DNA from: Rebecca billardiae RCC1528 | Taxonomy: Eukaryota > Protista > Haptophyta | DNA length: 64,000 nucleotides | Reading direction: 5' to 3' | NCBI GenBank assembly: GCA_965240325.2 | Contig: OZ251227.1 | Location: forward strand, 1,674,001-1,738,000 | Translations under genes and position numbers: made by a program | The notes under the pieces: generated by a model | What the model saw: only the letters and a program-made list of their open reading frames with translations | Told to the model about the DNA's origin: nothing | The model's database searches: none | Shown: positions 2,434-62,020 of the stretch, in pieces | Numbering within the stretch: the first letter of the stretch is position 1 | Layout of the letters: every line of letters begins with the position of its first letter

Positions 2434-2704
2434 GTCGCGCGCGGAGTGGACGGCGTGTTCTGCGTGCGCGCAGAATCGGTTTGCTGGCCACCGGTGATGA
2501 AAGGGTCCACTTTCTGGCCAAATTCGTCATTTCCGGGTTTATTGTCGCGGTTTAGAGCGCGTGATGATTTTTCCTGCCGTGGATCCGGCTCGGAGCGCCG
2601 GAAGCGTGCGTCCGGGAGCGGTCCTGCTGGCAAAGTGCCGCTCGGCGCTCTTGCTGATCAGCGGCCACGACGACTCATTCCCCTTCCGCCTCCGTTCCTC
2701 GGCG

Positions 2705-4771: not shown

Positions 4772-5123
4772 GGGCAGAGCAGTGTGCCAGGTTGGCTGCG
4801 CGCCGGCGGGCGAGGCGCTGCGCCTGTCGCATGATCCTCCACTCGCAGCTGCGCATGCATCGATGTTACCACAGTTTACTACTACTAGTAGTAAGAATAA
4901 GAGACGCACACAGCTCAGGCGAACATTAGCAACATAATTCATTAAAAAAACCAATTCGTGCGGCCCGTCCTGGTTGCTGTTCGTTCATTCGTCAAAAGCT
5001 TAGGGCCGGCGCCGCGCGCCGCGCCGAACGTCCGTCCGCGCTGGCCCGAACGCGAGGACCGTCCAGTGCGGCGCGTCGGCCGTCCGTGAGCGTAGTTGAC
5101 GAAGAATCAGCGAGGCAGTTGGG

Positions 5124-11546: not shown

Positions 11547-11777
11547 CGTTCAAACACTGCTCAATGTTCGGGGGCGTATTTTAGCGCCAAACGGCCGGCG
11601 AATGAAAACAAATCTGGCAGAGAAAAGATGCCGAAGGCGCACGATGGCGGCGTGTGATTTACCATCAAACACGACGGCAAGATGCAAGATACTTGGCTGG
11701 AACAAGCCACGGGCCCGTGGGCTGGCTCAGCGTGGCGCTATCCCTGCACGCGCGCGTGTGCCCGGCCGCTCTGGGCG

Positions 11778-13120
11778 ATGGCCGAACCTTCAGCGGCGGC
11801 CACCACGGATACCGCTGGAGGTGCCCCCGCCGCACCTCTGACCAACGGCTCGGCCGCGGACTCAGCCGCAGCCAACGGCACAGTGGCCACCGCACCCGTC
11901 GCACCGACGACGCTGGCTGCACCCGTGCGCGCTACCGAGGACACAGCAGATGGCCAGGTGGACAAGCCGCCGGCGCCCACGCCCGACCCACCACAACGGC
12001 CATTAACTGCGGCGGCAATGCTGTCGCTCCAACCCGCTGGCGCGCAGCCGCTGCCAAACGGAGGAGCTACAAACGGAACTGCGCACGGCGGCGCGGCAAA
12101 CGGGACGGGTGTGCCGCCAGCCAACGGCCAGGCACCGAGCCACGCGGGCAACGCGGCTGGCAAACGGCCGAGACTGTCTGAAGGCGGTGATCAGAAGGCT
12201 GCCTCCGACGCCGACGCCGATGGACCCGCAGCCGACGAGGCCGGCGACGACAAGTACGAGGCGCGCGTCGCCATCTGGAACCGCGTGACGCGCCGCAAGA
12301 CGAGCGGCAAGGCGGCGCCGATGCGCAAAAACCTGGAGGCGTACTTGACCGAGCACCCCGACTGCGAGGTGTACGTCGGGCAGGACCGCGAGCACGGCGG
12401 CCGCCCGCCGCCGGGCTCGGCCCTCGGCTCTCAGGCCCTGATGGGTGGAGGCGTGTTCATGAAGGGCCTCCGGTACAACGGCGACGTGGCGATGCGGCAC
12501 CACGGCATGTCGCTCCTCGCAAACCCGAACGCGCACAGCAGGCCTCCGATCCACCCGGGACGGCCGATGCCCAGGCGCGACATGGATAGCCCTGAGACGG
12601 GGTGCGTGCCGCGCCGCCGCCAGCCCGTGTGCCGCCCGCCATCTCACGCCCAGCCCGCGCCCCCTCGCATGCACTCGTTGCGCGCACGCACACTGGCACA
12701 GGCCGTTCGGCATCCGGTTCTACTCCCCTGTGATCAAGCCCAGCCCGGCGATGAACTGGGAGCAGCAGAACGGCGCTCAGGAGCCCATAGAGACTGAGCA
12801 CGGCACGCCGGTGGCGTCGGCGGTGCGCGCTCGCCACGCGGGCGTCTGCCGCGTCGCCGCGATGCGACACCTGACCCCGTCACGGTGCGCGCGCACTCAT
12901 GCTCCTCGCTTCTGCGCAGATGGCTGTGACCACATTCAGCCCGCCGCCACCCGTCGGCTGCACGCCTGGTGACCAAGAGGCATTCACAGACTTCAACTTG
13001 GACGCGGAGCATGGCCCCCCTGTGCACGGAGCCGGAGCGGCCGGGACCTCAGCGCATCCGCCGCGAGACGAACGAGCGATTGCGGCGAACGGCTCGAGCT
13101 CGGCTGACGCCGCGCACTGA
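11778..13120 (+). CDS. Low-complexity protein with a single BRK domain
   Basis: [37 protein letters not shown] fits the BRK consensus. Exons 11778-12601, 12702-12822 and 12920-13120 are in frame. Confidence 0.7.
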
Positions 13121-17573: not shown

Positions 17574-17692
17574 CGTGCAGCCGCGGAGGCGGTGCGTTTA
17601 AAAATGCCTCGCCCGCGCTGCTTGGCGGTGCCGGAGTGCTTCCTGGGCTGAAAGTCCGGTGCTGCCGAGCCGAGCTGGGAGAGCTCCGGCCC

Positions 17693-20016
17693 ATGGCGTG
17701 CGCCGCCGCCATCTTGCTGTGCATCCTGGCGCGGGCGAAAAAGCCGCAGCCGGAGGTGGAGCAATGGGCGCCATGGTGGCATAGCGTGGACGAGCTCGCG
17801 CGTAGCTACAACGCGTCGCTCACCGCCGCGGCCGGCCGTCGTGGGAGCGCAGGCGTGCGCCCGCACTCGCGCTGCCACCCGTCATGTACGCGCCGGGGCA
17901 ACTGCAACGAGTGGACAGGCGAGTGCGAGTGTCCGCTGACGGCGTATGGGCCTGGCTGCACGTATGCGTCGCTCCCTGCCTGCGCGTTCCAGCGCGGCAC
18001 GGCGGACATCCGCAGCTGGCTGGGGAGCAAGCTATTCCGCGGCGGCAGCAGCAGCCCAGAGGTGGGGCCTGTGAGCTGCGACTGCATCGAGCAGGCCTTC
18101 AATCTGAGGCATTACATGTGGGTCTCGCCCGTCGCGTCGAAGCACTGGTCTTCGCCTGTGCGGATCACTTGCGCCGAGTGGCGCGAGCCGAGAAGGCGCG
18201 TGCTCACGATCAACGACGTGATCAGCGCGGGCGCGGGCAACGTGACATGGAGCGAGGTGCAGGTTCGGGGCCGCTTCCTGGCGACGGTGTTGCAGGTGGC
18301 GCGCGGCATGGGCACGCACTTCTTCACCGTCGAGCGCAAGGGCGTCGGATTCCACGCGGACATGACCAGCGTGCCGATCAGTCGGTGCCCCCAGAAATGC
18401 CGCGGCGTGGGCGTGTGCGTCACGTCGCCCAGCCTGAAGCGGGCGCACTGCCTCTGCGGCGGCGCGACAGGCAAGTGCGAGCAGGACGGGCGGCGGCCCA
18501 CGGGAAAAGTGACGGAGCCGTGCCCGGGGAGCTCGAAGTGCTCGGGCCAGGGCACATGCGACGGGAACGGCTTCTGCCACTGCAAGCCGGGCTACTGGGG
18601 GCTCGACTGCGCCGAGACACTCGGCTCGGATGGCAGGCTCGCGCTCAGCCTGCCCGCGCCGAGGCCCAACCAGGTGCACGCGCCAGAGTCGGCCCGCCCG
18701 CGCGTCTACGTGCACAGCATCCCGGTGCTCCTGCGTACGGGCGCAGGGTTCTACCACGACTTCTACGAGCGCCTCACCGACCGCGTCCTCGCGAGTGAGT
18801 ACCGCACCGCCGATCCGGAGCACGCCGACTACTACTGGCTGCCGGGCCCCGTGCGGCGCGGCCAGTTCCTCGACAAGCTCAAGTACGTCAAGCGGCGCTG
18901 GCCGTACTGGAACCAGACGGTGGCGGCCGGCGAGGCGCGGCACGTGGTGTACACGGGGTGGGAGCTCGATCCGGGCAAGATCTTCGCGCAGGATCCCTTC
19001 GAGCCGTCCAAGTTCTACGGCCCGGACATGAACGTGGCGAGCCCGTCGCGCGCTTGGCTCGCCCTCTCCCACAACGGCATGGCGGACATTGCCGAGTTCA
19101 ACGCGCCGGGCTCGGCGCGGCGCTCGAAGATCCGCCACTGCTCGGTGTGCTACCAGCCGGGCAAGGACGTGGTTCTACCGTTCAAGCCCGGCGTGATCGA
19201 CGTGCCCGACTGCGGCAAGCTCAAGGCGCGCTCGATCTTCGCGCCGGGGCAGCTGAAGCGCGGCGCTGAGCAGCGGCCGACCAAGTTCTTCTTCGCAGGC
19301 TCCGTGCCCGTGCCCAAGAGTCAGCCGCGCAAAGCGGATCCGTACGAGCTCAAGCAGTACAACCCCCCGCACGTCCGGGCCGACATCCACCGCCTCCACT
19401 CGAGCACGCCGGGCTTCAAGGTCGTCGACTCCCGCGGCTCGGGCATCAAGGTGGACCCGGTCACGTGGATGCTCAAGTCGCAGTTCTGCTGGGTGCCGCC
19501 CGGGCAGCGGTGCGCGCGCAGCGCGCCTCGCCCGCGCCCCGCCGCGCGCCGGCATGACGCGTCCCGGCCGCTCCTCCCGCGCGTGACGTTCGGCCGCCGG
19601 CCCGCAGGTACGGTGATCCACGGCGGCACATCCTGTCGTCTGCATACGGTTGCATCCCTGTGTTTACGATCCCCAACGGCCACTTCACCTATGACGAGCT
19701 CATCCCATGGAATTCGATGGCGGTGGTGGTGAGCAGGGCGGAGCTGCCGCAGCTCGCAACCATCCTGGACAACTACACCGCCACGGATCGCGAGCGGATG
19801 CGCAAGCAGCTGCGCTGTGCTTGGCCTCGGCTGTGGTGGACATCCATCTACGGCTCGTGCTTTGGCGACGACGCGCGCTACGACGCCTTTGATGCGCTGA
19901 TGGCGACGCTGCGGTACCGCCTGCCAGGGCTGGCGGACAGCAAGCCAGCCTACGCGAGCTCCAACGACGCGTGCGACCACTTCGATAAGCCGCTCCGTCG
20001 ACGCATGCGTAGGTAG
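17693..20016 (+). CDS. Exostosin-family (GT47) glycosyltransferase with EGF-like domains
   Basis: Signal anchor; EGF-like C.RRGNCNEWTGECECP and CSGQGTC..GFCHCKPGYWGLDC; YRTADPEHADYY, PGKDVVLP, FFFAGS, SQFCWVPPG|..GCIPV. Intron 19510-19607. Confidence 0.88.
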
Positions 20017-20522: not shown

Positions 20523-21626
20523 TCAGATGAGCATCGCCTGCGCGCGGGTCCCGCGCAAACGCACTGCTGCGAAGCCGATGGCCAAGCCGACGATCAGAAG
20601 AAGAACGATTGCAGCGGCAGCTTGAACGCCCACAGACGGCAGGAGGAGCATGCGACCACGCGACTTGGAATGCTCGCCCTCAGACCGCAGAACAGGGGCG
20701 GCTGTAAGTGAGGACGGTTTGGTGGCTCCGCTGGTCGGCCGACTCGTGTAGATGAGGACGGCCCGCGTGCCCATTTCGGTCGGCACTGTACCAGTGAGGG
20801 AGTTCTCGTGCAAATCCATGAAAATAATGCTGGTCAGCATGCCCACCTCGGTGGGCACCGTGCCAGTGAGCGAATTGTGATCCAGATTCAGGTACGTAAT
20901 GCCGGTCAGCGCGCCCACCTCGGTCGGGACGGTGCCAGTGAGCAAGTTGTGGCTCACGGCCATGTAACGACCGATTCTGTTCAGCGCGCCCACCTCGGTC
21001 GGCACTGTGCCAGTGAGCGAGTTGTCCATCAGACTCATGTACGTCAGGCCAGTTAGCGTGCCCAACTCGGTCGGTACTGTGCCGCTGAGCGAGTTCACGC
21101 TACGATCCATGTCAGTGAGGCAGGTGAGCGTGCCCAGCTCGGTCGGGACGGTGCCAGTCAGCGAATTCACTTTGAAGCGGATGAGCTCCAGGCTGGTCAG
21201 TGCGCCCACCTCCGACGGCACTGTGCCGGAGAGCGAGTTCTCCCTCAGGTTCAGGTATGTCAGGCGCGTCAATGCGCCCACCTCAGTCGGCACGGTGCCA
21301 TTGATCAGGGTCACTGTCGCGGCCATGTAGTTGAGGTTGGTCAGCGCGCCCACTTCCGTCGGCACGGTGCCAGCGATGTTCAGCTTCAACTCGAGCCGAA
21401 TGGCAGTGAGGCTGGTGAGCATGCCCACCTCAGTCGGCACGGTGCCAGAGTAAAGACCTGAATCGGTCCATTCCACGCATGGCGTCGGACTCTCGAGGCA
21501 CCGCTGGACCCGCAAGAGGGAATCATCGTGCTCAATCCCGTCGTCTCCGAGAGGCGCACTCGTAGCAGGCTGGGCAACGAGGGCGAATACGGCCGCCGCG
21601 AAAAGCATGGCAACCGAGTTCATCAT
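20523..21626 (-). CDS. Leucine-rich-repeat receptor-like membrane protein
   Basis: Signal peptide, about 10 plant-type 24-aa LRRs (NSLTGTVPTEVGALT.L), C-terminal TM helix and very short tail. Intronless. Confidence 0.88.
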   Translation of the reverse strand: MMNSVAMLFAAAVFALVAQPATSAPLGDDGIEHDDSLLRVQRCLESPTPCVEWTDSGLYSGTVPTEVGMLTSLTAIRLELKLNIAGTVPTEVGALTNLNYMAATVTLINGTVPTEVGALTRLTYLNLRENSLSGTVPSEVGALTSLELIRFKVNSLTGTVPTELGTLTCLTDMDRSVNSLSGTVPTELGTLTGLTYMSLMDNSLTGTVPTEVGALNRIGRYMAVSHNLLTGTVPTEVGALTGITYLNLDHNSLTGTVPTEVGMLTSIIFMDLHENSLTGTVPTEMGTRAVLIYTSRPTSGATKPSSLTAAPVLRSEGEHSKSRGRMLLLPSVGVQAAAAIVLLLIVGLAIGFAAVRLRGTRAQAMLI

Positions 21627-39559: not shown

Positions 39560-40231
39560 TGACGCCCGTAGGTGTGCATCCGCCCACCCTCGCGTCGTCA
39601 GAACTTTTGGAAAGGAAAGTCGCGCCAAGGCGGCCCCGGCCTTCTCTCACGGCGGCGCAAGGGGCGCGGGGGCGCTGGCTCGCGATCCGAAGGGCAGTCG
39701 CTCGCGACCTCGCTTGGGCGGCGGCAGCGGCGCTGCGGCATACTGTTTGCCACCTGCGCGGCTGTGTGCGATCGCGCGGTCCCGTTCGTCGCCACGCCGC
39801 GCGCGACCGTTCACGCCAGTCTTTCCGCACTGTGAGTCACAAGTAGTGTGAGCACCCCTTGCCAGCGCACGGTGGCGGAGAGCCCAGACACCCCGTCACG
39901 CGCGCGACGTCCTTGTGGGGTGCGATGTACCCTGGTTGAGGTTCTTTGGGTTCCCGGAGGCACGCGCTTGCCCACGGGGTGGGCATGAGGATCATGGACG
40001 ACTGCTGCGCTGTCCATGACTCGTTGACCGATTGGCAGACGATGACTCATCTTGCAGTGGCAGTAGAGAGTGGTCTGGATGCTGAACAGGCTCACCAAAC
40101 TGCACCAAAACGCAGGCGCATGCTATAGCATTATGATATAGTGTGAGTCACACTCGGGAACTTGTATGGGGGTACCGGGTACGTAGAGTGTTCACTCAGT
40201 GTTCATCAGCGGGGCGAGGCTGCCGCGGGGA

Positions 40232-41710
40232 ATGGAGGCGCGCACGGCATGGCTCGTGATAGCGTGCTCATGGTCGTGCATGGCTGGGTCGCTGGGCATG
40301 TTCTATTCCTGGGGAGTTCTCTACCCGCTGGCGCTTCGTGACTACAGGAATCTGCGGGACGGCGTGACGGAAAGCTCCGTTGCCGGTGCGAGCACAATTG
40401 CTCTTGGCTTCTTTGCCGCCGCCGGCGCCCTCGGGAGCAGGCTCGTGAAGTCTCTAGGGCACAAGTTTGTGCTCGGGGCGGGCATCTTCCTGGTTTACAT
40501 CGGCTCGGAGGCACAGGTGCGCTCCCTGACCATCGAGGGCCTGTACGTGTCCTTTGGCTGCGCAGTTGGAACCGGGGCTGCGCTCGTGTACCTCACCGCG
40601 TACACGCTGCCAACGCTCTACCACTTTGGAGAGTGGCAGGGCCTGGCGACGGGCGTCGTGTCCACCGGGTCGATGGTGGGACAGCTCCTGGTGAGCAGCG
40701 TCTATGCCCACGGCCTTGCAGCCGGTGCTGATTGGCGGACCATGCTTGCAATCACCGCTCGAATCACAGCGGTGGCTGGGTTCACGATGCTAATGCTGCT
40801 CTTCATGTTGAGCAGGTCCAACACTACGTGTTCACCGGCCTGGACCGGGCGTGATTCGAGGCAAGATCTCCAGTTGGAGCAGGCCCCATTCGACCCAGAA
40901 TCGAGCACGCTGCCAGATGCTGTGCAAGAGTCAAACTCACCGCGCGAGTCTCTGCATGTGCACTCATCACCAGCGTCACTTGATGAGGGCACAGTTGCCC
41001 CTGCAGCAGATCACAGGCAGAGCCCCGGCCCCGATCACGAGCTGGGTGAGGGGAAGCAGGGACTGCCTGGTTGGTTGGACTTTGCCCTGTGTAGCTCATG
41101 TATCCGCCTGACCATTGCTGCTAACACTGGAGGCCTGGCCGTGTACACTGCCAACAACTTTCTCATGGCACAGGCAGTGGCATTTGGCATTGATGACTCG
41201 ACAATGCTGATGGCGCTGGCGATCATGCTATCGGCCGCCGGCATTGGTGTGCGTCTTTTTTCGGCCCACATTGCCGTCGACCGACTTGGACTCTCGCCGT
41301 TCTGGTGCTGGCGAGTGGCCATCGGCACAATGGGCTGTGTGTGCTTGCTGCCAGCAGCCCTCGGCACAGTGATTCCGCGCATCGCAATGGGCTCGTTTGC
41401 TTTGTGTCTTGGGAGCTGCCTGGGTATTTGGGCCTCATTCTACCCCCTCTTGCTCGCCGAGCTCTTCGGGAAGCAGAACGTAACGCACGTTTTCGGCATG
41501 CTTCAGGCTCTCGAGTCCCCCGGCATGTTTGCTGGTCCGCTCATTTTTGGCCTCATTGCTGACCGTTTTGGTGGGGCGTATGCCTCGAGCTGGATCCTCA
41601 TTGGTGTGTGTCCGATCATTGGAGCAGCGCTTTGCCGAGGCATCACTGCAGAGCTCGTTCAGAGCGAGCTTGGGCTCGTGCAGCGCCGGCGGCGGCCGCC
41701 CCTGCGCTAA
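40232..41710 (+). CDS. MFS transporter (monocarboxylate-transporter-like)
   Basis: GMFYSWGVLY, GLATGVVSTGSMVG, LAELFGKQN...VFG, GPLIFGLIADRFGG.Y; 12-TM layout with central loop. Intronless. Confidence 0.88.
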   Translation: MEARTAWLVIACSWSCMAGSLGMFYSWGVLYPLALRDYRNLRDGVTESSVAGASTIALGFFAAAGALGSRLVKSLGHKFVLGAGIFLVYIGSEAQVRSLTIEGLYVSFGCAVGTGAALVYLTAYTLPTLYHFGEWQGLATGVVSTGSMVGQLLVSSVYAHGLAAGADWRTMLAITARITAVAGFTMLMLLFMLSRSNTTCSPAWTGRDSRQDLQLEQAPFDPESSTLPDAVQESNSPRESLHVHSSPASLDEGTVAPAADHRQSPGPDHELGEGKQGLPGWLDFALCSSCIRLTIAANTGGLAVYTANNFLMAQAVAFGIDDSTMLMALAIMLSAAGIGVRLFSAHIAVDRLGLSPFWCWRVAIGTMGCVCLLPAALGTVIPRIAMGSFALCLGSCLGIWASFYPLLLAELFGKQNVTHVFGMLQALESPGMFAGPLIFGLIADRFGGAYASSWILIGVCPIIGAALCRGITAELVQSELGLVQRRRRPPLR

Positions 41711-45871: not shown

Positions 45872-47101
45872 ATGACGACCGCCGTGCTCCTGCGCCGCGC
45901 GCTTCTTCGCCGTGCGGTTCGCGGCCATGCGGCTTGGGTCCCGAAGGCCACGATAACGACAGTGTCCATCGAGCCTGTCGTCAGCGAGGCGGACGCGCGT
46001 GAGCTGCACGCGTTCGAGGCCAAGATGGACCGCGAATACTTTGGGATCCCTGTCATTGCGACAGAGGACGAGTACGTGCACCATATCCGCTCAGGCCGAG
46101 CAAATGCGTTTGTGGCGCGTGCTTGGACGCACGAGGCCGGCACGCCTGCTGCTCGCGGTGCCGTCGTCGGGCTCGCAACGTACTCAATGAGTCTCAACCT
46201 GTGGGATGGCCCGCAGCTCTACTGGGAGCACTGCACTTTCGACAAGAACTTCCGCGGCTACGGCCTCTTTGATGGCTTCCTCGGAAGTATCTGCCAGAGG
46301 GCATCCGACGCCGGGATTGTGCAGGTGTGCTGGACGCTCAGCGACTGGAATCACAGGCCGTATGCCCTCTACGCACGCCTTGCGGACGAGTGGTTCGAGC
46401 CGCACCCGGGTCACCCGCACTCCAGCGGCCAGCGCGTGAACTTCTACATCGACAAGGATCAGATTGCAGCGGCAGGCGCACATGGGCCGTGTTCGCCTGT
46501 TGAGGAGTTGCCTGTGACCGTTTCCCTCGCCACGCCAGAGGATGCCGACGAAATTCATGCACTGGCCTCCAGCCTTGCCCCTGAGTGCGTGGCTTGCGAC
46601 GTCGGGCAAGCTCATCATGGGCAGCACGGCGCAGGGCCTGGCTCGCCGCCTCGCACGAGCGCACGCGATGTCGCCGAGGCCATCTCAGATGGGCGTGTCG
46701 TTTGCGTGAGCGCGCGGTGGAATGGCAACGTCGTTGGGGTCGCCTACTGCATGCGCGTCTTCTGCAGCAATATTGGCCCGGAGCTCGTCCTCAACTTCGT
46801 GGGTGTGCGTGAGGCGCACCGCAGGCAGGGCATTGGCGCCGCAATGTTGAATGCCGTGCGGCGGCACGCGAGCGACACGGACGAGCGAGGCATTCGCATC
46901 TTCGTGCCGGAGTGGAACACCCCAGCAATCGCCTTTCTTTCCGGGCCGCATGTCGGAGCCAAGGAATGGCTGGACCCTCACCCAAGCTTCCCTGACCAAC
47001 CGGGCAAACGCTTTTGCTTTGTCTGCCGTGGCGACAAGTTGCGGGCCGCCGCCGCCCGCCACCGTGAGCGTGGACCAGGTCACGTCTTCAAGATTCAGTA
47101 G
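45872..47101 (+). CDS. Tandem (two-domain) GNAT N-acetyltransferase, diamine-acetyltransferase-like, with possible mitochondrial presequence
   Basis: Two GNAT units: VVGLATY..FRGYG..DWNHRPYALY and VVGVAY..HRRQGIGAAML..EWNTPAIAF. Arg/Leu-rich N-terminus lacking acidic residues. Intronless. Confidence 0.82.
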   Translation: MTTAVLLRRALLRRAVRGHAAWVPKATITTVSIEPVVSEADARELHAFEAKMDREYFGIPVIATEDEYVHHIRSGRANAFVARAWTHEAGTPAARGAVVGLATYSMSLNLWDGPQLYWEHCTFDKNFRGYGLFDGFLGSICQRASDAGIVQVCWTLSDWNHRPYALYARLADEWFEPHPGHPHSSGQRVNFYIDKDQIAAAGAHGPCSPVEELPVTVSLATPEDADEIHALASSLAPECVACDVGQAHHGQHGAGPGSPPRTSARDVAEAISDGRVVCVSARWNGNVVGVAYCMRVFCSNIGPELVLNFVGVREAHRRQGIGAAMLNAVRRHASDTDERGIRIFVPEWNTPAIAFLSGPHVGAKEWLDPHPSFPDQPGKRFCFVCRGDKLRAAAARHRERGPGHVFKIQ

Positions 47102-50900: not shown

Positions 50901-52031
50901 GCGCGCCACGGACACATGCGCGACGAGATCGCGGCGGGGGCGGCGAGATCGCGGCGGGGGCGACGGGCAACAACCTGCCCGCGGGCGCGTTCGTCACTCG
51001 AGGAGCAGCGCGCAAGGGCGAGCCGAGTCCGGAGCACGCGAGCTCGTCGCTCGCCGACCGGAGCAGAGCGCGCCGCCCGCCGCCGCCGAGCGAGCGGCGC
51101 GGCAGAGCTGATGAGCCGGATGCGCCCGGAGCTCGCGCGGCTGAAGGGCGAGCACGAGCACGCGAGCTCGCGCCTCGACGCCGAGCGCGAGCTCCTCCTC
51201 AACTCGGTCGACGGCGGCGCGGAGGTCCGGCAGCAGCGTGAGGACTCACAGACAGTGTGAGTGAGCCGCGCGCAGCTCAGCCTGCCGCTGGCAGCCGCCG
51301 TCTTCGAGGCCGACGCGGCGGAGGAGGCGGCGGGCGAGCCGAGCACGGCGGCGCGGTGGAGCAGGCGCGCACGCGCGGCGGCAGGCGCGACGCGCCGCTC
51401 GCCTCGTTCCACCGCCCCGAGCTCCGCTCGGTCGGTCTCGGTGCGCGGCTGCGCAGCCGGCAGGCCGGCGGGCCAGCAGTCTGCAGTGGCGCGCGCTCTC
51501 GCTCTGCCGGCACGAGGCGTGCCGGCTGAGCGACCAGCGGCCCGTCGTCGAGCGCATGGCGCAGGGCGAGTACCTCAAGCAGGTGCGCCCGCTCGCGCGC
51601 ACGCGCCGGCTCGCGACCAGCGGCCCTTCGTCGAGCGCATGGCGCAGCGCGAGCACCTTGCAAGCTGAAGCAGGTGCGCCCGCACGCGCGCACGCGCCGG
51701 CCCGGCGCCGCGCGGCGCCTCTCGCCCTCTCGCCCTGCGCGCGCCGCCGCCCCGCTTCCCCGCGCGGCCCGTCCGCGCCTCTCGCCCTGCGAGCGCGCCG
51801 CCCCGCTTCCCCGCGCGGCCCGTCCGCTGGTGTCCCATGCCACCCTTGGCCGTGCGCGCCCGCATACTCGCGCCGAGTCCGAGACTCGGTCTCGGGTCTG
51901 ACTCTCCCTCTCAGAGTGGCTGAACTGTCTTTCTGACTCGGACTGACTGACTCGTCAGTCTCATTCTCAACCACTGCGCCGCGGGCCCCGAACTGCGTTG
52001 GTTCTACGGAAAAGGACCGCGGAACGCGGTC
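47926..52031. mobile_element. Foldback element with GACCGCGTTCCGCGG termini and long inverted arms carrying coding-like fragments
   Basis: AT|GACCGCGTTCCGCGGTC...GACCGCGGAACGCGGTC|AT. Arm ~48180-48530 is inverted at ~51250-51610. A further end abuts head-to-head at 47865-47921. Confidence 0.7.
49652..50749. mobile_element. MITE with (CGGATAT)CCCACTGC termini and ATCCTATNNCATAGGAT subterminal palindromes
   Basis: 15-bp inverted ends at 49652-49666 and 50735-50749. Palindromes near 49668, 49697, 50526 and 50703. Confidence 0.75.
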
Positions 52032-53104
52032 ATACGGATATTGAATTGATGTGCCGTCAGACGAGAGCTTAATATATTAGTTATTAGAGCTCTACCCGCG
52101 TACACGTCAGACATTAAGCGGGGCGGGCCCGAAACTCGGTAGTGCGGCACTGTGACGTGACTGACGGCTACGAGTGCTGGACCTGGTCACAGCGAGAGTG
52201 CTGAGTGTTTAGTGCTGATTTCGGGCTGGATCATATGCGCCCTCTGGAGGGGTCTGGGGCCCGACACTCGACTTGTTCAGCTCACTGCGCGGCGTGCGGC
52301 GTGGCGCGGCGGCGTGCCGCGTGGCGCGCGCGGCAGGGCGCGCGCATCATGGTCGGCAGTGGAAACACAGCGAGAAACGCGCCTCGCTCCCACGCGCCAC
52401 GCGCTTTCGCACCCAGAATATCACACACGAGTCAAGCACGGACCGTGCACGAGCCGTCCGACGAGGAACCCGCACTGGGCCAAAGGGGCATCGGCAGCGG
52501 GCGGGGCGCGCGGGGTGAGCGGGGCATGAAAGCGACGCCGATGACCGTCGGGACCCGCCGCAGCCGTGCGCACCTGCGCTGAGTGAGAGTCCGTCGGATT
52601 GAACGCCTCGTGCGCAGCGGGCCCCGCTGCTCCGGCGAGCGGCGCCTGGCGCAAGGCAGCCCCTCCCGCTCGGCTTGCTGAGCCCTTGCCCCTTCACTTT
52701 CTCATTATGATTAGCGGGCTCAAACTCTAACTAGGCCGGACCAGGCGGGCGACGGCCCGGGAATACTCGGGTAGGCGGCGAGGCCATATATATGTCTAAG
52801 TTTTACTATATCTATGGTCACACATGAACGAGAGTCTACCCACAATTATACTTGGGCGTGGGTTAATCGTTTATCGTTGATTCCTCTGAATACAAACAAG
52901 CCGGATGTGCGGGCCTGTTTTGTGCCTAATGCATGCTGCTAAAGGGGGACTACTCAAAATTCGAAACTCGGTCTCCTCCAGCCCTGAAATTCGTCCCCGG
53001 GCCCGTCCCTGCTTTCTTGATCAAAGATCTTTTTGAAACGTGGTTAGGCGGCCCGCACTGCGGGCTCCACGCTGCGCGCTCCGCCCTGCACCGCGGGCCA
53101 TCAT

Positions 53105-56100
53105 TAGGTGGGCCCACTGAATTTATCGCGCACGTAAAAAAATGATTTTCACCCGAAAAGGGCCGCTCAGCGACCGTCAGCGTCGCCGCTGAACCTCTCT
53201 TCCGGACAGCCCCGACGGAGCCGCGGCGAGCACCGGATTCAGCGTCGAAGTTGGACGGTGTCGGGCCATCAGCAGGTCGACGGCGTCGACGCCCGCGCCC
53301 TCGGCGGCGCCATGCGGCACCCCGTCGCGCCCCGTCGCCATGGCGGTGAGTCCGGACGGGCGAGGGGAGCGAGTACCCGGACTCCAACGGCCGTCGCGAT
53401 TCAAAATTTGAACGTGGCATCTGGAACGACCAGTACACGAGCTGTGAGTTTGAATCGAGATGTGCAACTTCCCCCAACCTGCGAGCACCAGCGGCGTGGA
53501 CGAGCTGGGACAGCCGCGCGCGGTGCTGGGACAGACGTACGCAGGTGTGGTCGCGTCGTCGGGCTCGGCTTCACCACCTTCCGAGCCCCGCACCGCCGCC
53601 GCGCCGGCCGCCTGTGCGCGAGCGTCTGGCGGCGGCAAACAGGCCTCATCCGCCGTGGGAGCCACGGACAAGGTGTACGCGGTCGAGAAGGGCGCTCGGC
53701 AGTTCCTGGAGGAGTATCCATCGCCTACCGCCTCTGCTTCGCGCGCTGACCCACCCGAGAAGCTCGACTTCGCCTCCGCGCGCGCGCTTGACGGCGTCGT
53801 TCGCAGCATCTACAAGCCCAGGCCGAGCGATCGCGATCGTGAGATCAAGGCGCACCTCGAGAACGTGGGGATCTGCTCGCAGAAGGTGACGTTCTCGCTG
53901 GTGGTCGCGAACTTCTTTGGAGTCCCCCTCCGCCGTCCGATCAACAGCCAGCACGACCTCTACGGCACGCTCGGCGAGATGGGCCGTGCGCTGCAGGTCA
54001 AGGTTGACCGGCACTCGGCTGCGCTCGCACAGGTCAAGGAGACGGGCCGCAAGCGGAAGGCGTCGTCCGACGTGACGCAGGCGAAGTCGGAGAGCTGCGC
54101 CGCGCGCTTCGACGCCGGCGTCACGCGTGAGGCGTTTGCGCGCGTGCTGCCGCAGGCGCCGCCGGTTGCACTCGGCGGAGCCGCGCCGCGCCCCGCCGGC
54201 CAGCGCCCGGCTGCTGCTGCGAGCAGCACCCCGCGCTCGACGCCGCCGATCGCGGATGCGCACGGCCCGGCCGGCGCACCCGAGCCGCGGGATCTCGCGC
54301 GCAGCCAGTCGCTCGTGAAGACGGGCTCCGCCTCGGGCTTGGTGAGCTTCGAGGAGGCGCGCGCGCGCACGCGCGCGCAGCGGCAGCCGCCGCCCGAGCT
54401 GCAGCCGCCGAGGATCGCGGGCGATGCCGTGCGCATCAGCAGCGAGGGCAAGCGCCCGGACCTGCCGCTGTCGTACGAGGGGCTGTACTACAAGTGCGAT
54501 GCCGCCGTGACCAAGTGCCGCGCCATCGAGCTCGAGTGCGCCGCGCTCGGCGAGCAGCTCGAGCAGGCCGAGCAGCAGCTCGCGGCGGCCGCCGAGCGCG
54601 AGCTCGGCGCGACGCGCAAGCTCGAGGACGAGCGCAAGCGCTGGGAGCGCGAGCGCGCAGCGCACCAGAAGGACCTGGCCGCGGCCGAGCGGCGCGTGGC
54701 CGACGCGGTCAAGCAGAAGGATGAGATCGTGTTCGCCGCGGTGCGCAGCGACAGCAAGGCCGAGCACGCCTTCGAGCAGCTCGAGCAGCGGAAGAAGCAG
54801 CAGGCGGACGCGCTGAAGGAGGCGGAGCGCGCGCACGCGGAGCAGCTCGAGCAGCAGCGCGCGGCGCTGCAGGCGACGATCGACGAGCAGGCGGAGGAGC
54901 TGGCGAAGGTGCAGGCGGCGCTGGGCGAGGCGGTGAAGGCGGCCGACGCCGCGCGCATCGAGTCGGAGCGCGCCCGCGCCGAGACGCAGCGCACGGAGAA
55001 CGGGCTGAAGAGCAAGCAGAAGCAGCTCGTGGCCGCGAGGAAGGCGTGCGGGTATTGGCGGTCCGTCTCCACCAACCACTCCGAGAAGATCGAGACGCTC
55101 AAGGGCACGCTCGAGTCGCGGAAGCGGCTGCGAGGTCCGGAGATGCAGACGCAGCTGCGCCAGAGCGAGGCGAAGGTGGTGCAGCTCGAGGCGGACAAGG
55201 TGAAGCTCAAGGGCGACGCCGAGCGCGCAAACAGCAAGGCCAAGCGCGCGGCGGGCTCGGCGGCGTACGCCAAGTCCGAGGCCAAGCGTGAGGTGAAGAA
55301 TGCGCGCAGGCAGGCCGACGCGGAGTCGAAGAAGGCGGAGCGCAAGCTCCAGGAGGCGCGCGAGCAGGCTCTCGACCTCGAGCAGCGGATCATCGACCCG
55401 GCCGGTCTCGAGGACACGCAGCGCGAGCTTGCCGACGCGGAGGCGGCGCACAAGGCGGCGACTGCCCAGCGGGACGAGCTCAGCTCGCAGCTCCGCAAAG
55501 CCGAAGCCGAGGTGAAGAAGCTCAACCAGCAGCTCGGCGCGAGCCGCAGCGTGTCCAACCCGACCGCCAAGGACATGCGCAAGAGGAGTGAGTGCCGCGC
55601 CGCAGCGCGCGCGTGCGGCCGCGCGGCTGCGCGGCCGCGCGGCTGCGCGGCCGCGCGGCTGCGCGGCCGCGGACGGGCGTCGAGCGCGCCGCGGCCGCGC
55701 GTGGCCGGCTGCACCACTCACCCGCCCATCCCCCGCGTTGTGCGCCTCGCCGCCGCTCGCAGGGGCCGAGCTGCAGGCGGCGTTCCTCCAGTGCAACACC
55801 GAGTTGGGCATCGCCTCGAACAGGCTGACCCAGGCGGCCGAGACGCTGCTGCAGGCCGCGGGCATCAACATGGACGGCGCGCGCAGCAAGCGGGCGCGCA
55901 AGGACGGCAGCCGCGCCGTGGTCGGGATCCCGAGCCGCACGACGGCGCAGCGGCTTACTGCGCTCGGTGACCATGTCGCCGACTTCCAAGCCGCGGTCCA
56001 TATCTCCGCCGACCTCAACAAGGCCATCGAGCGCGGCGAGGGCCCGGAGGGCGTCGCTGGAGCCGCCTGCTTCGACGGCGCGGCGACTGCCGGCATGCAC

Positions 56101-59100
56101 TTCAACATGGCGACGCTCAAGACTGAGAGCGGCTCGTTGGCGCTGCACATCTTGCATACCGACGGACACGACACGGGCAAGGATATCGCCACGGGCTACT
56201 CGAAGGCGCTCAAGCAGATCGCCAAGGTCGTCGCGCACCTGACTGGCCTGGGCGTCGGGGCGATCGACGGCGTCGCGCTCGCCAAGAGCGATCTAATCTC
56301 GGAGCGGATCTTGAGCGTCGTCATCACGGACAGCGCCTCGGCCGAGCAGAAGGCGGCGGAGCAGCTCGGGATCATGAAGCAGGCGACTGCCTTGGCGGAC
56401 GAGCAGAAGGATATCGCGCTCGAGCTGGCGCGCGCGCTCGACGGGCAGGCCGGCAGCTTCACCGTGACCGTGGTGGATGAGCAGGGCCAGACGGTGCAGC
56501 AGTCCTTCAACGTCGCGGCGGCGCAGCTCGCTAGCGACGGCGCGCCGGCGACTGGCAACGAGGGCGGCAGCACCGCCGAGACCACGCGGCCGGACGAGCG
56601 CGCCGGCGCCGATCCGATGGAGGTGCAGGCGGAGGCGGAGGCGGAGGCGGAGGAGGAGGAGAAGGCGCCCGAGCCCGAGCGGCGCGCGAACGCAATCGCG
56701 GAGGAGCTCTTGACAACGCACGGCGACCTGATCGAGGCGATCCGCCTGTATCGCCGCCGTCCGACGGCGGAGCGGCGGCAGCGCGTGCTCGACAAGCTTG
56801 AGTACATCAACTGCCTGCTGCACGCGGTGATGCACGCGCTGACCGCGGGCTCGGACGCCGTCGAGGACGCGCTGCTGCAGGTGCTGCCCGCCGGGTTTAT
56901 CGACGGGGAGTACACGAGCCTGAGCGGGCACCAGCCGTCCGCGACCAAGGACGGTGCGCGCGATGCCCGTCGTGCGCCGCTCTCAGCGCGGACGCAGCAG
57001 CACACACTCACCTCGCGCGCGCGCCCCGCCGCGTCCCGCCCCGCCCCGCCCCGCCCGGGTCTGCTCTGCCCGGACCCGCCGCCCCGCGCCGCCCCGCCGC
57101 GTCTCGGCCCGCCTCGGTCCGCAGGTAAGGTGCAGAAGGACAGCGGCGGCTACTCGCTGCGCACGCGGCCGCTCAACCACCTGATCCACACGCTCACCAA
57201 GATGTTTGCGCGCGTCGCGACGAAGGACTGGAGCCTCTTCGAGCGGTTCATCAAGTTCGTCATTGACTACAACAACGAGCGCGATGACGGCATCCGCTGG
57301 ACCGCGGACCAGATCCGCGGCCTCGTCACCGGCTTTGGGCGCACGTGCGGCGCGCGTGGTGGCGCGACCACTCTGGTGCGCGCCGCGCCGCGCCGCGCCA
57401 CGCCGCGCCGCGCCGCAAGAGCGCGGCTGAGCGGACGCACGCGCGCGCGGCTGGCCCCGCGATCGGCGCTGCCCCGCAGAACTGCACGGCGGCGTGCCGG
57501 CTCATGTACCTCTGGATCCTCTTCACCGAAGACGAGCTGGCATGCGGCGAGAAGCTGTCGGCCTCGCACCGCTACTCGTACAACTGCCTGACGCGGCCCG
57601 AGTACCAGGCGGCCATCTACGCCAAGGGCATCTGCGGCCCGTTCTTCTACACGCAGGTGCTCGCCGAGCTGCACCGCGTGGAGAGCGAGGGCACCGTGGC
57701 CACCGAGCTGCAGGACGTCTGCACGCGCGTGTACGAGGTGGCCAAGTCCATCGGCGTGGACGCCACCCGCTTCATGCGGCGCGAGGTGGATCTCTTCGCG
57801 GGACGCAAGCGGATGGCGATGGTGGACGAGCTGCTCCGTGAGCGCTGCGAAGCTGAGCGGCGCGGCGCGCACGGCGTGCACTGGGAGCAGTGCAATCTCA
57901 CGAAGCGCTTCATCGAAGTCTTTTGCGCCGCGTTCGCCACTCGCTTCAACCACTTCACCGTGCGCTGGCAGCTCGAGCTCGCGACGCCCGACGATCCGCT
58001 CGCCGACCTGCTCGGCTCGATGCGCGACCTGGACGAGCAGCGCGCGCTCGCGCTGCGCAACGCGCACACGACCGGTGCGCCGTGTGAGCGCATCGCAGGT
58101 GAGTGCGCGGCCAGCGCGCACGCGCTGCGCGTGCGACTCTCGCCGCGCGCGCAGCTGACACCCTGCGTGTCCGGGCCCGCGCGCCTCGCTCAGGGATGCT
58201 CGGCGAGGCGCAGCGCACGGGGCGCACGACGAACGCGCACCACCTCGCGAGCAAGGTGCGCGCGAAGGCGAACAAGACGGGCACCTTCCTCATTGGCCTG
58301 CGCCCGGAGGAGAGGAAGCTCGCCTTGAAGGTTTCCCGCAAGTTCAAGCGGCAGGATGACGCCGTCAACGGCAGCACGCTCATCGGCCGCCTCGCGCGCC
58401 ACGCGGCGCTCTCGCGGCCGAAGAAGCTCGAGCGCAAGGCCAAGCTGACGGCCAAGCGCGACAAGGAGGAGCAGCACAAGAATCGGATCGTCGAGGAGGT
58501 GGCGCCGTCGCGCGTGACGCGCTGGTCGCAGCTCGCTCCGGCGGAGAGCGCGCTGTCGGCGCCGGCGCTCCTCGACCAGATTGACGTCTTCCGCTTCGTC
58601 GACAAGTCCAAGGTCGTGCCCAAGTCGAGGTCGGGCAAGAAGGAGAAGCTGATGGGGATGCTCGCCGACCTCGTCGTGGGCAAGTATGGCGAGGCGGCCA
58701 AGGACGTGCCGTACGCCCAGCTGATGGAGTCGGCGGGCCGGGTGCGCGCCGCGCCGCTCAGCTGTGCCGGCGCGTGCCCTCGCCGTAGCGCGCGTGCCTC
58801 GCGTGTCTGATCGCTGCTCGCGCCCGGTGCCCACACCCCATCGCGCGCTCGCAGAAGGGCGCTCCGCGCCGGCGCGGCACTGGCGAGCCCGCGGCCAAGC
58901 GGCGGCGGGCGCCGAAGCCGAAGCGGAGGCAGTACTGGGACATCACGGGCCTGCACGACTTCCGCATGGGCGCCACGGGGCCGGAGGTGCTCGTGGGCTG
59001 GGAGCCAACCGACGAGGTGGACGAGGACGGCTACGCGATCGAGGACGACGACGGCCGGCCCGAGCTCAAGCACTGGCCGCCCTCCTGGCAGCCGCTCTCC

Positions 59101-59888
59101 GACCTCTCGAACGACGCTGAGACCATGGCGATGCTCGACCAGCTCCTCAAGGTGGCCGACGGCGAGGCGCTCATCGCGTGGGACGACAAGGTGCAGGCGC
59201 TGATCGACTCTCCGCTCGAGGTGGGCACGCGCGTCATCGTGCAGCTGCCCGTGTCGTCCGACTCGGAGGACACGGACACCTTCTCGGGCGTCATCAAGAG
59301 CGTCGACCAGAGCGCCGACAAGTATGTCGTGGAGCCCGTCGGTGCCGAGCCGCGCGCCGTCCCGCGCGAGGCGATCTTGTCGAAGGCGCCGCCGCCGTCG
59401 ACGGCCAAGAAGGGGCTGTTCGTGCGCGCGCTGCTGGAGACTGAGATCGACGACGAGGCGTGTCGCGTCTGGAGCTACGGCAAGCTCAGCAAGCTGCTCA
59501 GCGGCAACGAGGTGGCGGTCGTCCGCACCGCGCTCGATGACGCGGACGCGCTGGTACCTGTGTACGATCTGCAGGATGCGCGCACGGGCGAGTGGCTGAC
59601 GACTCTCTGACGCCGGATCCGGCCGTGAGAGCGCCGAGGCGGCCGCCGCGGCGAAGTCTCGCGCCGCCGCTGCCCCCACCGACTGCTGCCGAACGGGTCG
59701 CGTGGGGCCGCGCGGCCGCGCGCTTGGCGCGCGGCCGAGCACAATCCTCTGATGACTGCACCAACGTGTCTGATTGGTCCCATTAGGTACCTAGAGTCAT
59801 AAACCAGTCCAAGTTTGAGCGTCTGACCCTCGTAGACAGGCCTCCAACAGTGGCGCGCCAGCCTCACAGCGGCCAGTGGGCCCCCCTA
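53105..59888 (+). mobile_element. Complete autonomous hAT-like (hATw-type) DNA transposon
   Basis: TIRs TAGGTGGGCCCACTG (53105-53119) and CAGTGGGCCCCCCTA (59874-59888) match 14/15. 7-bp TSD CCATCAT at 53098-53104 and 59889-59895. Encloses the transposase gene. Confidence 0.9.
53460..59610 (+). CDS. ~1830-aa DDE transposase with N-terminal coiled coil and C-terminal chromo-like plus tandem Tudor-like domains
   Basis: Exons 53460-55587, 55763-56953, 57125-57375, 57480-58098, 58194-58741 and 58855-59610 sum to 5493 nt in frame. Motifs CFDG (D 56074), VITDSAS (D 56329), CLLH (56812), TGAPCERIAG (E 58086), NKT..FL. An alternative first exon from ATG 53312 is possible. Confidence 0.85.
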
Positions 59889-60236
59889 CCATCATTCATC
59901 AATCATTGACGAGTTGGCTGTGGCATCACGTCACGCCCGCATCGGCGGCGTCCGAGGCCGTCATAGCTAGCCGCCCTGTCCGCCGCCGCCCCCCCCCCCC
60001 CCCCCGACCCATCCCGCGCTCTAGCTTATGCAGATGGTCAACCGAGAAATTGCATGTAGAGTCGGACACGGACCTACCCTGAGGCCACTGAAAAACAAAC
60101 AGCAATAATCAATGGCGCGACAGCACTGGCACTTAGCCCGCCCGACCAGTCACACAGACACAGTGTCACACACACGTACCGCGGCACACACCCCGCCCCG
60201 CCAGGGCAAAGATTTCATTAGTGATTCTTATTTTAT

Positions 60237-60356
<120 letters not shown>

Positions 60357-62020
60357 AGAGGCAGAGAGAGAGACGAGTAGAGTTATAACTAATAAGGCTT
60401 TCGGGCAGCAATGGAGCCTACTGCGACGTAGCCAGTAGCTTACTAGTGGCGCACGGCCCCCCCGAAAGGTCTGAGCGTGAGCGAAAGCCGGGGGGCGGCG
60501 GCGCACGTGCTCCGCAAAATCAAAAAAGATAATGGCGCGCGTGATGCTGGTGGGGATTTTGTACTTTTAGCAGGGGGAAAGCTGCTCACTAAGTCTAATG
60601 AATGGCATTGGGGGATTGGCAACCCCCTTGATGACGGCTTGATTGCGTTCGTACTATCCGATTCCCCTGCTCGTATTAATCTCTTTTTGCAGCATGGATA
60701 CTAATAGGACAATTCCCTCGCTCAATAGCACAAATGTCGCCTTGGCCAGTTGGCCTTCTTGGCCCAATGTGGGTGGCATTCTACTCTCTATCTGCGAGGA
60801 TTAAGAGCTCTCTGATGAAAGAAGTGTGGTGAGTGTGTCCTGGACAGCCTGAGCGGAAAGGTCAATAATTGCGCTTGTGATTCAAGATTCAGACTCAGCA
60901 CCCCGTATTGCCAATTGATTCAAAACCAATGCGGGTGTGAATCGACGCGTTTGGGCTCAATCTGCAATGAATAAGAGCTCTCTGATTAGGGTGTGGGGGC
61001 AACACGGCAAAGTCCGCGCTAACGTTAGGTAGTTAGAGAAATTTTAGATAGGCGGGATCCGGCCCTATTTGAGCTCTAACGTGGGCCTCGCTCCGGAGGG
61101 CCCAGGTCGCGCTTACGAGGGGGGAATCTGGCTCTGTAAGGGCTCGCCGTAACGTTAGCTCCCCTAAGTGGGAGATCGCGTCGCCGCGACCTTTGATTCG
61201 CGCCGCGGCGCCGCAAAGGGCGCACGTGGACAGCTCGGCTCGCTGGCGCAGCGCCGCACGGAGGCGCGCGCGCGCAGCTCGCGAGTGCGCGCGCGCGCGT
61301 TCTCGCGCGTTCGTCGCGCGAGAAGAAGTCTTCGCGTTCGCGGCGCCTTCGTGCGACCAGAAGCCGACGTGGCCTACGTCGTGCGCTCTTGCGTGCGTGC
61401 CGCAGTGTGCCCGGCAAGCGTTGCGTGCGCGCCGTGCCGCGTGCGCTCGCCGCGCTGGTGCACTCCTTGGAGAGCGCGCGGTTGGCGGGTCGCGCGAGCA
61501 GGGTGCCGTGCGTAGCGCTGCGAACGACTGGAGCTACCGCGGTCCGCACCCTGCACGTCAATGAAAGCGCCAAGGTGGCTGAGCGAGCGCTGGCCCTCGC
61601 ACGCGGTGGCGATGGTTCTTCTGGGCACCCTCGCCGCGTTTTGAATGCCGAGATTCAAATCTCTAACGTAACAAAAGCGACCGTGCCCCCACCCTCATCC
61701 AAGGGGCTTACAAAAGTGGTATTTGTAAGCCCCTTGCCTCATCCACGCTTTCCTTGGTAGGCTTCCGCTTACATTTTCATATTCACCGGACAAATAGAGA
61801 TCCTTCGATCAGTCGACGCGGCGTCGCTCACAGCGCAGGCAGGTGTTTGGCGTGGCTGCACTCTCGAGGTGGCTGGGATACAACATCCAGGTGCAGCACC
61901 CTCCCCGTGTGGTGTCAGAGCGCGCTCTCGAGCGCGTGCCTCCGAGCGCGGGGCGGCCGCTTGCTGCAATGGCCGCCTCGATGAGGTGCGGCAACGCGCC
62001 CCTCACCTGCCTGCGCCGGT

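Follow-up and report, generated by a model that had tools for sequence, protein, structure and literature searches.

Can a cut-and-paste DNA transposon carry, on its own transposase, the modules with which other proteins read chromatin marks? The question is raised by a locus in a stretch of 64,000 nucleotides from the haptophyte Rebecca billardiae RCC1528 (assembly GCA_965240325.2, contig OZ251227.1, positions 1,674,001 to 1,738,000 of the forward strand). This whole stretch is called the window here, and positions are counted from its first letter. An earlier note, made from the letters alone, had described positions 53105-59888 as an intact hAT-like transposon whose transposase ends in a chromodomain-like module and two Tudor-like barrels. 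We give a probability of about 0.6 to the following reading: the locus is a cut-and-paste transposon that is autonomous and was probably active recently, it belongs to a eukaryotic family that is very rare, and its transposase has a DDE-type core and a reader-like tail.

The element occupies 53105-59888 of the window, and its outer parts are the following.

53098-53104, no strand: left target-site duplication, CCATCAT, with an identical 7-mer at 59889-59895
53105-53119, plus strand: left terminal inverted repeat, TAGGTGGGCCCACTG, 14 of 15 positions matching the right end
53120-53459, plus strand: 5' untranslated or subterminal region, without conserved coding; the long frame has its first ATG at 53460
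59611-59873, plus strand: 3' untranslated or subterminal region
59874-59888, minus strand: right terminal inverted repeat, CAGTGGGCCCCCCTA as read on the plus strand; the terminus is shared with relatives
59889-59895, no strand: right target-site duplication, CCATCAT, identical to the left 7-mer

Inverted repeats of 15 bp had been claimed for the ends, and they are there, short of perfect identity: TAGGTGGGCCCACTG (53105-53119) and TAGGGGGGCCCACTG (59874-59888, other strand) agree at 14 of 15 positions. The 7-bp duplication, also claimed, is perfect, and CCATCAT stands directly outside both ends. With no mismatch allowed, the terminal sequence occurs within the window only at the element's own two ends, and the chance expectation is 0.17 matches even with two mismatches permitted. 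This structure alone in the window combines a 7-bp direct repeat with 15-bp inverted termini (one mismatch at most), and 39 of 40 dinucleotide shuffles had no such combination. The window holds no second copy of the element. A terminus-like sequence, GAGGTGGGCGCACTG, lies at 21198-21212 on the minus strand, with two mismatches and without a partner; it is probably a chance match and could be the remnant of an old end.

Relatives of the element come from estuarine or marine metagenome assemblies. Their lineages were assembled from the relatives' contigs, one metagenome scan and one profile search: lineage A consists of L001 (6661 bp) and L006, a pair with 99.3% identity; lineage B of the overlapping sequences L002, L003, L004 and L009; and lineage C of a protein only, P0003. 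L001 and L006 keep their 99.3% identity exactly as far as ...CCCCCCTA and are unrelated past that point. Lineage B ends in ...CTCTGGCCCCCCTA, and unrelated sequence follows. At its left end L001 reads TAGGGGGGCC..., with the terminus at about 116, as in the left end of the window copy; it carries TAGGGGGGCCAG near the left end and CTGGCCCCCCTA near the right end. Found in L001, L006 and L009, the terminal GGCCCCCCTA is common to three lineages whose proteins are only 30-55% identical. Because L001 and L006 part exactly at the terminus, the ends are genuine, as is the mobility of the family, and the conserved GGCCCCCCTA, together with two copies of one lineage in different flanks, confirms the right end of the window copy to the base. 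The family transposes, and the description of an intact, mobile cut-and-paste element was correct.

The right end of the window copy, TAGGG, fits the pattern YARNG, and the left end, TAGGT, departs from it at one position; in the relatives, TAGGG stands at both ends of L001 and at the right ends of L006 and L009. If both ends begin with TA, the duplication is the 7-bp CCATCAT; an 8-bp reading, CCATCATT, requires asymmetric ends. The flanks of L001 (1-115 and 6643-6661) show no target-site duplication, with ATTTGTC on one side and GCTGACT on the other, and this contig may be a composite that joins the ends of different copies.

How common is the family? An exhaustive phmmer search with exon 2 of 1.84 billion representative proteins found three true relatives only, none of them annotated, and all fragmentary calls running into introns. 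The metagenome scan gave the same two Joint Genome Institute samples only, the profile of exons 4-5 matched only itself among 5.8 billion proteins, and no relatives were found in viral and prokaryotic genome collections. With about four lineages among roughly 15 billion proteins, the family is real but very rare in public data.

One more sequence, L008 (Logan ERR14847150), is 99.69% identical to window positions 57448-59710, with seven differences (three non-synonymous, two synonymous and two intronic). It is either another copy or a strain variant, and since its contig ends before the 3' end of the element, a second insertion site is not distinguishable. The perfect duplication, the near-perfect termini, the open six-exon frame and this 99.7% identical independent copy or variant lead us to conclude that the window probably holds a recent insertion of a functional copy. 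The substitutions between L001 and L006 are close to neutral, as expected of copies; only the first part of this count, up to exon 2, is reliable, and it is uninformative on function.

The transposase gene has the six exons and the length of about 1830 amino acids first proposed for it: 1830 residues with no internal stop, and introns that are all GT..AG (donors GTGAGT or GTGCGC, acceptors CGCAG or CTCAG). Its parts are listed here.

53460-55587, plus strand: exon 1, amino acids 1-709; a weakly conserved N-terminus and a coiled-coil-like region rich in A, E, K, R, Q and L, in open frame
55588-55762, plus strand: intron 1, GTGAGT..CGCAG, with an 8/16-mer GC-rich tandem repeat inside
55763-56953, plus strand: exon 2, amino acids 710-1106; first part of the catalytic core
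56074-56076, 56329-56331 and 56812-56823, plus strand: D814, D899 and C1060..H1063, in exon 2, invariant in four lineages
56954-57124, plus strand: intron 2, GTGCGC..CGCAG, 171 nucleotides, in frame and stop-free; position kept in all relatives
57125-57375, plus strand: exon 3, amino acids 1107-1190; RPLNHL.H ... KDWS ... GFGRTCGARGGATTL
57376-57479, plus strand: intron 3, CTG/GTGCGC..CGCAG/AAC; the L001 intron at 4166-4250 has the same flanking codons
57480-58098, plus strand: exon 4, amino acids 1191-1396; best conserved block, ending TTG...ER[IV]AG
58086-58088, plus strand: E1393, at the end of exon 4
58099-58193, plus strand: intron 4, GTGAGT..CTCAG; same position in lineages A and B
58194-58741, plus strand: exon 5, amino acids 1397-1579; MLGE.QRT...VR.KANK block, basic, helical region
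58742-58854, plus strand: intron 5, GTGCGC..CGCAG; if retained, a stop at 58808-58810
58855-59610, plus strand: exon 6, amino acids 1580-1830 and stop; reader-like tail, 41-42% conserved in lineages A and B

The positions of the four introns tested (introns 2-5) are conserved in the relatives, and L001 has GT..AG at all four, including an equivalent of window intron 5. At the site of intron 2, the open reading frames (ORFs) of the relatives continue into unrelated sequence past KDG. Intron 3 is the sole ambiguous junction; its donor is placed at 57376 by the ending GFGRTCGARGGATTL of exon 3, which recurs in each of the three lineages that have sequence at this site, and the L001 junction is the same CTG/GT...CAG/AAC. 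Exon 3 is 57% identical to lineage A and 42% to lineage B. The corresponding values for both lineages are 52-53% in exon 4, which contains the conserved stretches RPEY.AAIYAKGICGP and TVATELQDVCTR, and 41-43% in exon 5.

Two of the introns, window intron 2 (56954-57124) and L001 intron 4 (4876-4977), are in frame and stop-free. Prokaryote-style gene callers read through or into such introns, and consequently the database 'proteins' P0001-P0003 are fragmentary with intron-derived tails. GC-rich short tandem repeats fill much of three window introns (55594-55671, 57022-57113 and 57379-57416), their units being the 8/16-mer GCGGCCGCGCGGCTGC, (CGCCC)n and (CGCGC)n.

In the N-terminal half, amino acids ~350-705 (54507-55574) consist to 71% of A, E, K, R, Q and L and to 4% of P and G. 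Residues 510-709 are 31% identical to P0002 of lineage A, the KRLRG.E motif included, and P0002 has a Pfam match to Alanine_zipper. By its composition the region appears coiled-coil-like, which is unusual for a transposase, and a role in oligomerisation is assumed. A subterminal motif, AGTGGSC, is not enriched.

Is the core that of a transposase, and of which kind? D814 lies in CFDGAAT, D899 in ITDSAS and C1060/H1063 in NCLLHA; the two Asp residues and NCL[LF]HA are invariant in four lineages. E1393 lies in TTG...ER[IV]AG, ahead of a conserved R...L...VR.KANK block, and does not vary among the three lineages that have sequence in this part. The D-D-CxxH-E motifs that had been pointed out in the protein are therefore present and conserved. 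About 160 residues separate D899 from CxxH and about 330 separate CxxH from E, the latter region being predicted as largely helical where it was modelled. This motif arrangement would put the core into the hAT/P/Kolobok/MuDR/Dada group, closest to hAT. We take TDSAS, the ~330-residue CxxH-to-E distance and the ER..G...R...N block to be more like hAT than like MuDR or P. In the literature, CxxH or DxxH follows the second Asp in hAT, P, Kolobok, MuDR, Dada and IS256, in the form DxxH in Dada and IS256 (PMC3706591), and hAT elements typically have 8-bp duplications and YARNG termini (PMC3014272). Motif order, spacing and YARNG-type ends alone favour hAT; we would call the core hAT-like, and the placement in hAT is plausible but unproven.

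The tail encoded by exon 6 has four recognisable parts.

58897-58929, plus strand: basic run KRRRAPKPKRR, resembling a nuclear localisation signal, read from the translation; basic in lineage B, weaker in lineage A
58933-59145, plus strand: chromodomain-like module of three strands and a helix, from profile and AlphaFold model, with an acidic insert of 12-13 residues in the window copy
59230-59382, plus strand: barrel 1, SH3/Tudor-like, AlphaFold strands at tail residues 126-176, no conserved aromatic cage
59419-59601, plus strand: barrel 2, SH3/Tudor-like, with conserved RVW.YG, [FY]D[LV]Q and WL

All four parts lie where the earlier note had placed them. The three tails are 41-42% identical in the alignment and follow the pattern [WY]..GILD.R...EVL.SWE.TW...EW..[ST]WEP...L, then a helix (AWDDKVQALI) and then two beta-rich stretches. 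A profile of the first part, compared with 177,635 PDB sequences, gave 16 matches, 15 of them to chromodomains (LHP1, Rhino, CDY/CDYL and CBX1/2/5), all in the same register. Taken together, 15 of 16 would be hard to ascribe to chance, and they agree with the chromodomain-like character suggested for this part. AlphaFold puts strands at tail residues 29-38, 43-50 and 77-80 and a helix at 88-97, at a predicted local distance difference test score (pLDDT) of about 55-68; the check on the chromo fold is this order of secondary structure, with the acidic insert between strands 2 and 3. At the aromatic-cage positions, by comparison with HP1/LHP1, the three tails have W, Y and W at position 1 and W throughout at position 2, and lineages A and B have W at position 3.

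After the chromo part the AlphaFold model has two barrels of five to six strands. Foldseek against the PDB matched them to SGF29 (2.2e-4) and FMRP (3.4e-4), then to SETDB1, 53BP1, ADCP1, AGDP3 and SHH1, and tandem Tudor/Agenet/SAWADEE/Spindlin readers dominate the matches. The two SH3-type barrels described at the outset thus resemble tandem Tudor/Agenet pairs at the level of fold. Barrel 2 keeps a W, a Y, an F/Y and an adjacent Asp in all lineages. Pfam gave no Chromo or Tudor match for the window tail, and Chromo_MORC2_6th on barrel 1 of L001 stays below threshold (23 bits against a cut-off of 27). The barrel profile had no match among PDB sequences, and a Foldseek comparison of the tail with viral structures returned generic barrels only. 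The fold class that these profiles and models support is a chromodomain-like module followed by two Tudor-like barrels, and a tail of this kind might read histones.

A mechanism can be proposed from these parts. The weakly conserved N-terminus presumably binds the element ends, and the ~350-residue coiled-coil-like region presumably oligomerises. The DDE-type core, with D814, D899, CxxH and E1393 as the predicted catalytic residues and a chemistry of the hAT type, would excise the element at its TAGG...CCTA ends and reinsert it with a 7-bp staggered cut. The tail would tether the transposition complex to nucleosomes bearing a particular methyl-lysine mark, and so bias the landing site, by analogy with the chromodomains of chromoviral integrases in retrotransposons. 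Catalysis by these residues, the hAT-type chemistry, histone binding and the mark to be read are inferences, and on heterochromatin as the target one can only speculate.

A number of results weigh against this reading. For the core, Pfam searches of all six exons and of all relatives (E<=1 to 10) found no core family and no hAT match, the block around E1393, which intron 4 splits, being scanned in pieces or with in-frame intron read-through (L001). Phmmer and three family profiles found no transposase among PDB sequences, the AlphaFold model of exons 2 and 3 is poor (pLDDT 49), and Foldseek of the core gave nothing significant, with Hsp70/actin-type ATPase domains, which are of the RNase H-like class, in the lead (E 0.02-0.2). 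For the tail, the chromodomain E-values of 0.087-1.4 are each non-significant alone, and the AlphaFold model has moderate confidence (pLDDT 60.6). The third cage position is Asp (GWEPTD) in the window copy, so that the Y/W/W cage once read there lacks its third aromatic residue. Barrel 1 has no conserved aromatic residues, the template modelling scores (TM-scores) of the barrels to Tudor pairs are low (0.2-0.4), and tandem KOW pairs, which bind nucleic acids, are also among the barrel fold matches. The 7-bp length of the duplication is a single case, from one insertion with both flanks, and nothing marks the insertion site as heterochromatin.

These results bear first on the placement in hAT, which the earlier note had proposed and which the searches did not support: there is no Pfam hAT domain, no PDB sequence match and no significant fold match. 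The element may be a transposon whose transposase is not hAT and belongs to another CxxH superfamily (P or Dada-like) or to a separate one, in which case hAT-type chemistry and hAT sub-group labels would not apply; we regard this as possible, with the odds clearly against it. No member of the family has a hAT Pfam domain, no profile links it to Hermes or other solved hAT proteins, and the three relatives that the exhaustive search gave include no annotated hAT. At 7 bp the duplication is shorter than the typical 8, and Dada makes 6-7 bp and has the motif as DxxH. As read from the alignment, the first Asp lacks the Trp that usually follows it in hAT, and CxxH comes ~160 residues past D899 rather than close to it. 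The literature searched contained no definition of hATw and no confirmation of the 7-bp duplication as its hallmark, which the earlier note had stated.

On the other side, the ends fit YARNG, and the CxxH-to-E distance and the TDSAS and ER..G motifs resemble those of hAT. In the AlphaFold model of exons 2 and 3, D814 is placed in strand 1 of a three-strand beta-meander, after which comes a long helix, an order shared with RNase H-like folds. Hermes (2bw3_A) is the sole transposase among the top 50 Foldseek matches, at rank 44 with E 0.19 and with the longest alignment (295 columns). Rfam gave no family for 51000-62000, and since the insertion site has no small-RNA gene, targeting of the Dada type is excluded. 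Against the P superfamily stands that Pfam found no THAP domain, expected of P elements, in exon 1 or P0002.

The second alternative concerns the tail. The barrels could be generic SH3/KOW-like domains that bind DNA or RNA (for example, the element ends) or proteins rather than histone marks, and the chromo-like part alone would then, if anything, contact chromatin. We consider this unlikely without being far-fetched. The KOW tandem domains of Spt5 and KIN17 are among the fold matches, barrel 1 lacks conserved aromatic residues, the barrel profile finds no Tudor domain by sequence, and the Pfam matches of the tail are only sub-threshold. However, tandem Tudor/Agenet/SAWADEE/Spindlin pairs that read methyl-lysine make up the majority of the top 50 fold matches, barrel 2 keeps its aromatic residues and adjacent Asp in every lineage, and the barrels are physically coupled to a chromodomain-like module. 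A more ambitious proposal is that the family is an unrecognised, superfamily-level DDE lineage, related to hAT but outside it, with a permanently fused, multivalent histone-mark reader (chromodomain and tandem Tudor); if so, no earlier DNA transposon would be known to pick its targets through direct reading of chromatin marks. This seems doubtful to us, and more so than either of the two alternatives above.

We think it very improbable that the locus is a domesticated, immobile host gene and that the termini and direct repeat are remnants or coincidence. There is only a single copy in the window, the protein is long, and its large coiled-coil region is unusual for a transposase. However, the termini and the duplication are intact, the same terminus recurs in three lineages, one of which has two near-identical copies set in different flanks, and the near-neutral differences between L001 and L006 are as for transposon copies.

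The reading of the locus as a transposon with a reader-like tail also needs that tail to belong to the transposase, as the earlier note had it. Judged from the frame, the tail does belong to it: upstream, the exon-6 frame runs into a stop at 58786-58788, within intron 5, and the first ATG in exon 6 (58966) lies 3' of the conserved basic run and of the first chromo-like strand, so exon 6 is not translatable alone and has to be joined to the rest by splicing. For lineages A and B, tblastn finds the tail homologue ~110-130 nucleotides downstream of the exon-5 homologue, on the same strand; all three lineages that have sequence in this part keep both the tail and the place of the intron. That exon 6 is a separate downstream gene is the least credible alternative of all, for although an ATG-initiated ORF of 214 amino acids (58966-59610) exists and is called as a separate gene in the Logan assembly, conservation reaches upstream of that ATG, the frame is closed, the tail of each of the three lineages keeps its distance from the counterpart of exon 5, and the window and L001, where the junctions were mapped, offer canonical GT..AG sites at this place.

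Retention of intron 5 makes a tail-less isoform conceivable. A perfect 22-nucleotide inverted repeat pairs 57851-57872 in exon 4 with the donor region of intron 5 (58742-58763), and it could in principle mask that donor and favour such an isoform. A repeat of this length was reached in 2 of 60 shuffles, and the repeat is absent in the relatives.

The surroundings of the element are eukaryotic nuclear DNA with 57-75% GC. The neighbouring ORFs at 2561-4768, 6973-8070, 11682-12794, 17636-19729, 40199-41707 and 45872-47098 are ordinary eukaryotic genes, so that at the scale of the window the element sits in gene-bearing DNA. The neighbours comprise a Misato-like tubulin-fold protein, a ZIP transporter, a BRK-domain protein, a GT47-like protein, an MFS transporter and a GNAT acetyltransferase. 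The ORFs that flank the element have no Pfam match. A poly-C run lies at about 59985-60007, ~100 bp downstream of the element, and a (GA)67 microsatellite at 60240-60373, ~350 bp downstream.

Chromatin-reading insertion targeting is established for retrotransposon and retroviral integrases, and we found no report of it for cut-and-paste elements. If the proposal is true, a natural fusion of a chromodomain and a double Tudor to a DDE transposase would mean that DNA transposons arrived at this solution on their own, and it would provide a compact natural model for chromatin-directed DNA insertion. A core without a Pfam match and about four lineages would also add an unsampled branch to the hAT/P/MuDR-type group, to which the ancestors of the V(D)J recombinase belong as well.

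How does the element compare with known systems? It resembles the hAT elements Ac, hobo, Hermes and Tol2 in its short inverted termini (TAG/CAG, YARNG), in a similar duplication length, in its one transposase gene and in the order D...D...CxxH...~300-residue region...E, with the E in an ER-containing block. It differs from them in having no match to hAT Pfam families or solved proteins and no BED zinc finger, in its 7-bp rather than 8-bp duplication (one case), in the ~160 residues between the second Asp and CxxH and in the ~350-residue coiled-coil-like N-terminal segment. Its protein, with the chromo and double-barrel tail, is about three times the usual length. Dada shares a 6-7 bp duplication and a DDE core with D/CxxH, and is related to hAT, P, Kolobok and MuDR (PMC3706591); unlike this element, Dada targets small-RNA genes, of which there are none at this site, and no sequence similarity was detected.

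For the barrels, the best fold matches are the tandem Tudor/Agenet readers SGF29, 53BP1, FMRP, ADCP1 and the SAWADEE domain of SHH1. Several of these have an aromatic cage on only one of their two barrels. There is no significant sequence similarity to these readers, and the TM-scores are those given above.

Among transposable elements, the searchable literature describes chromodomains for Gypsy-type integrases, and the authors of GingerRoot sought a chromodomain in the transposase of their element, without finding one. In the literature searched, whose coverage is incomplete and excludes Repbase, we met no description of a cut-and-paste transposase, hAT-like or otherwise, with a chromo or Tudor tail. 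A Gypsy element with a Tudor domain was presented in 2025 as the first reported transposable element with such a domain (PMC12477816). Gypsy-10_Ec32 of Ectocarpus, a Tudor-bearing Gypsy element, is a case of an insertion enzyme of a transposable element with a Tudor-type domain; it is a retrotransposon with a single Tudor domain and no sequence relationship to the element described here. The closest parallel in design is found in the chromoviruses (Ty3/Gypsy), which also have a chromodomain-type C-terminal module on the inserting enzyme. According to the passages of PMC12477314 and PMC6839031 that cite Gao et al. 2008, the chromodomain of the chromoviral integrase directs integration to H3K9-methylated chromatin. 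The chromoviral enzyme, however, is a retrotransposon integrase with a single chromodomain, whereas the protein described here would be a cut-and-paste transposase with three reader-like modules.

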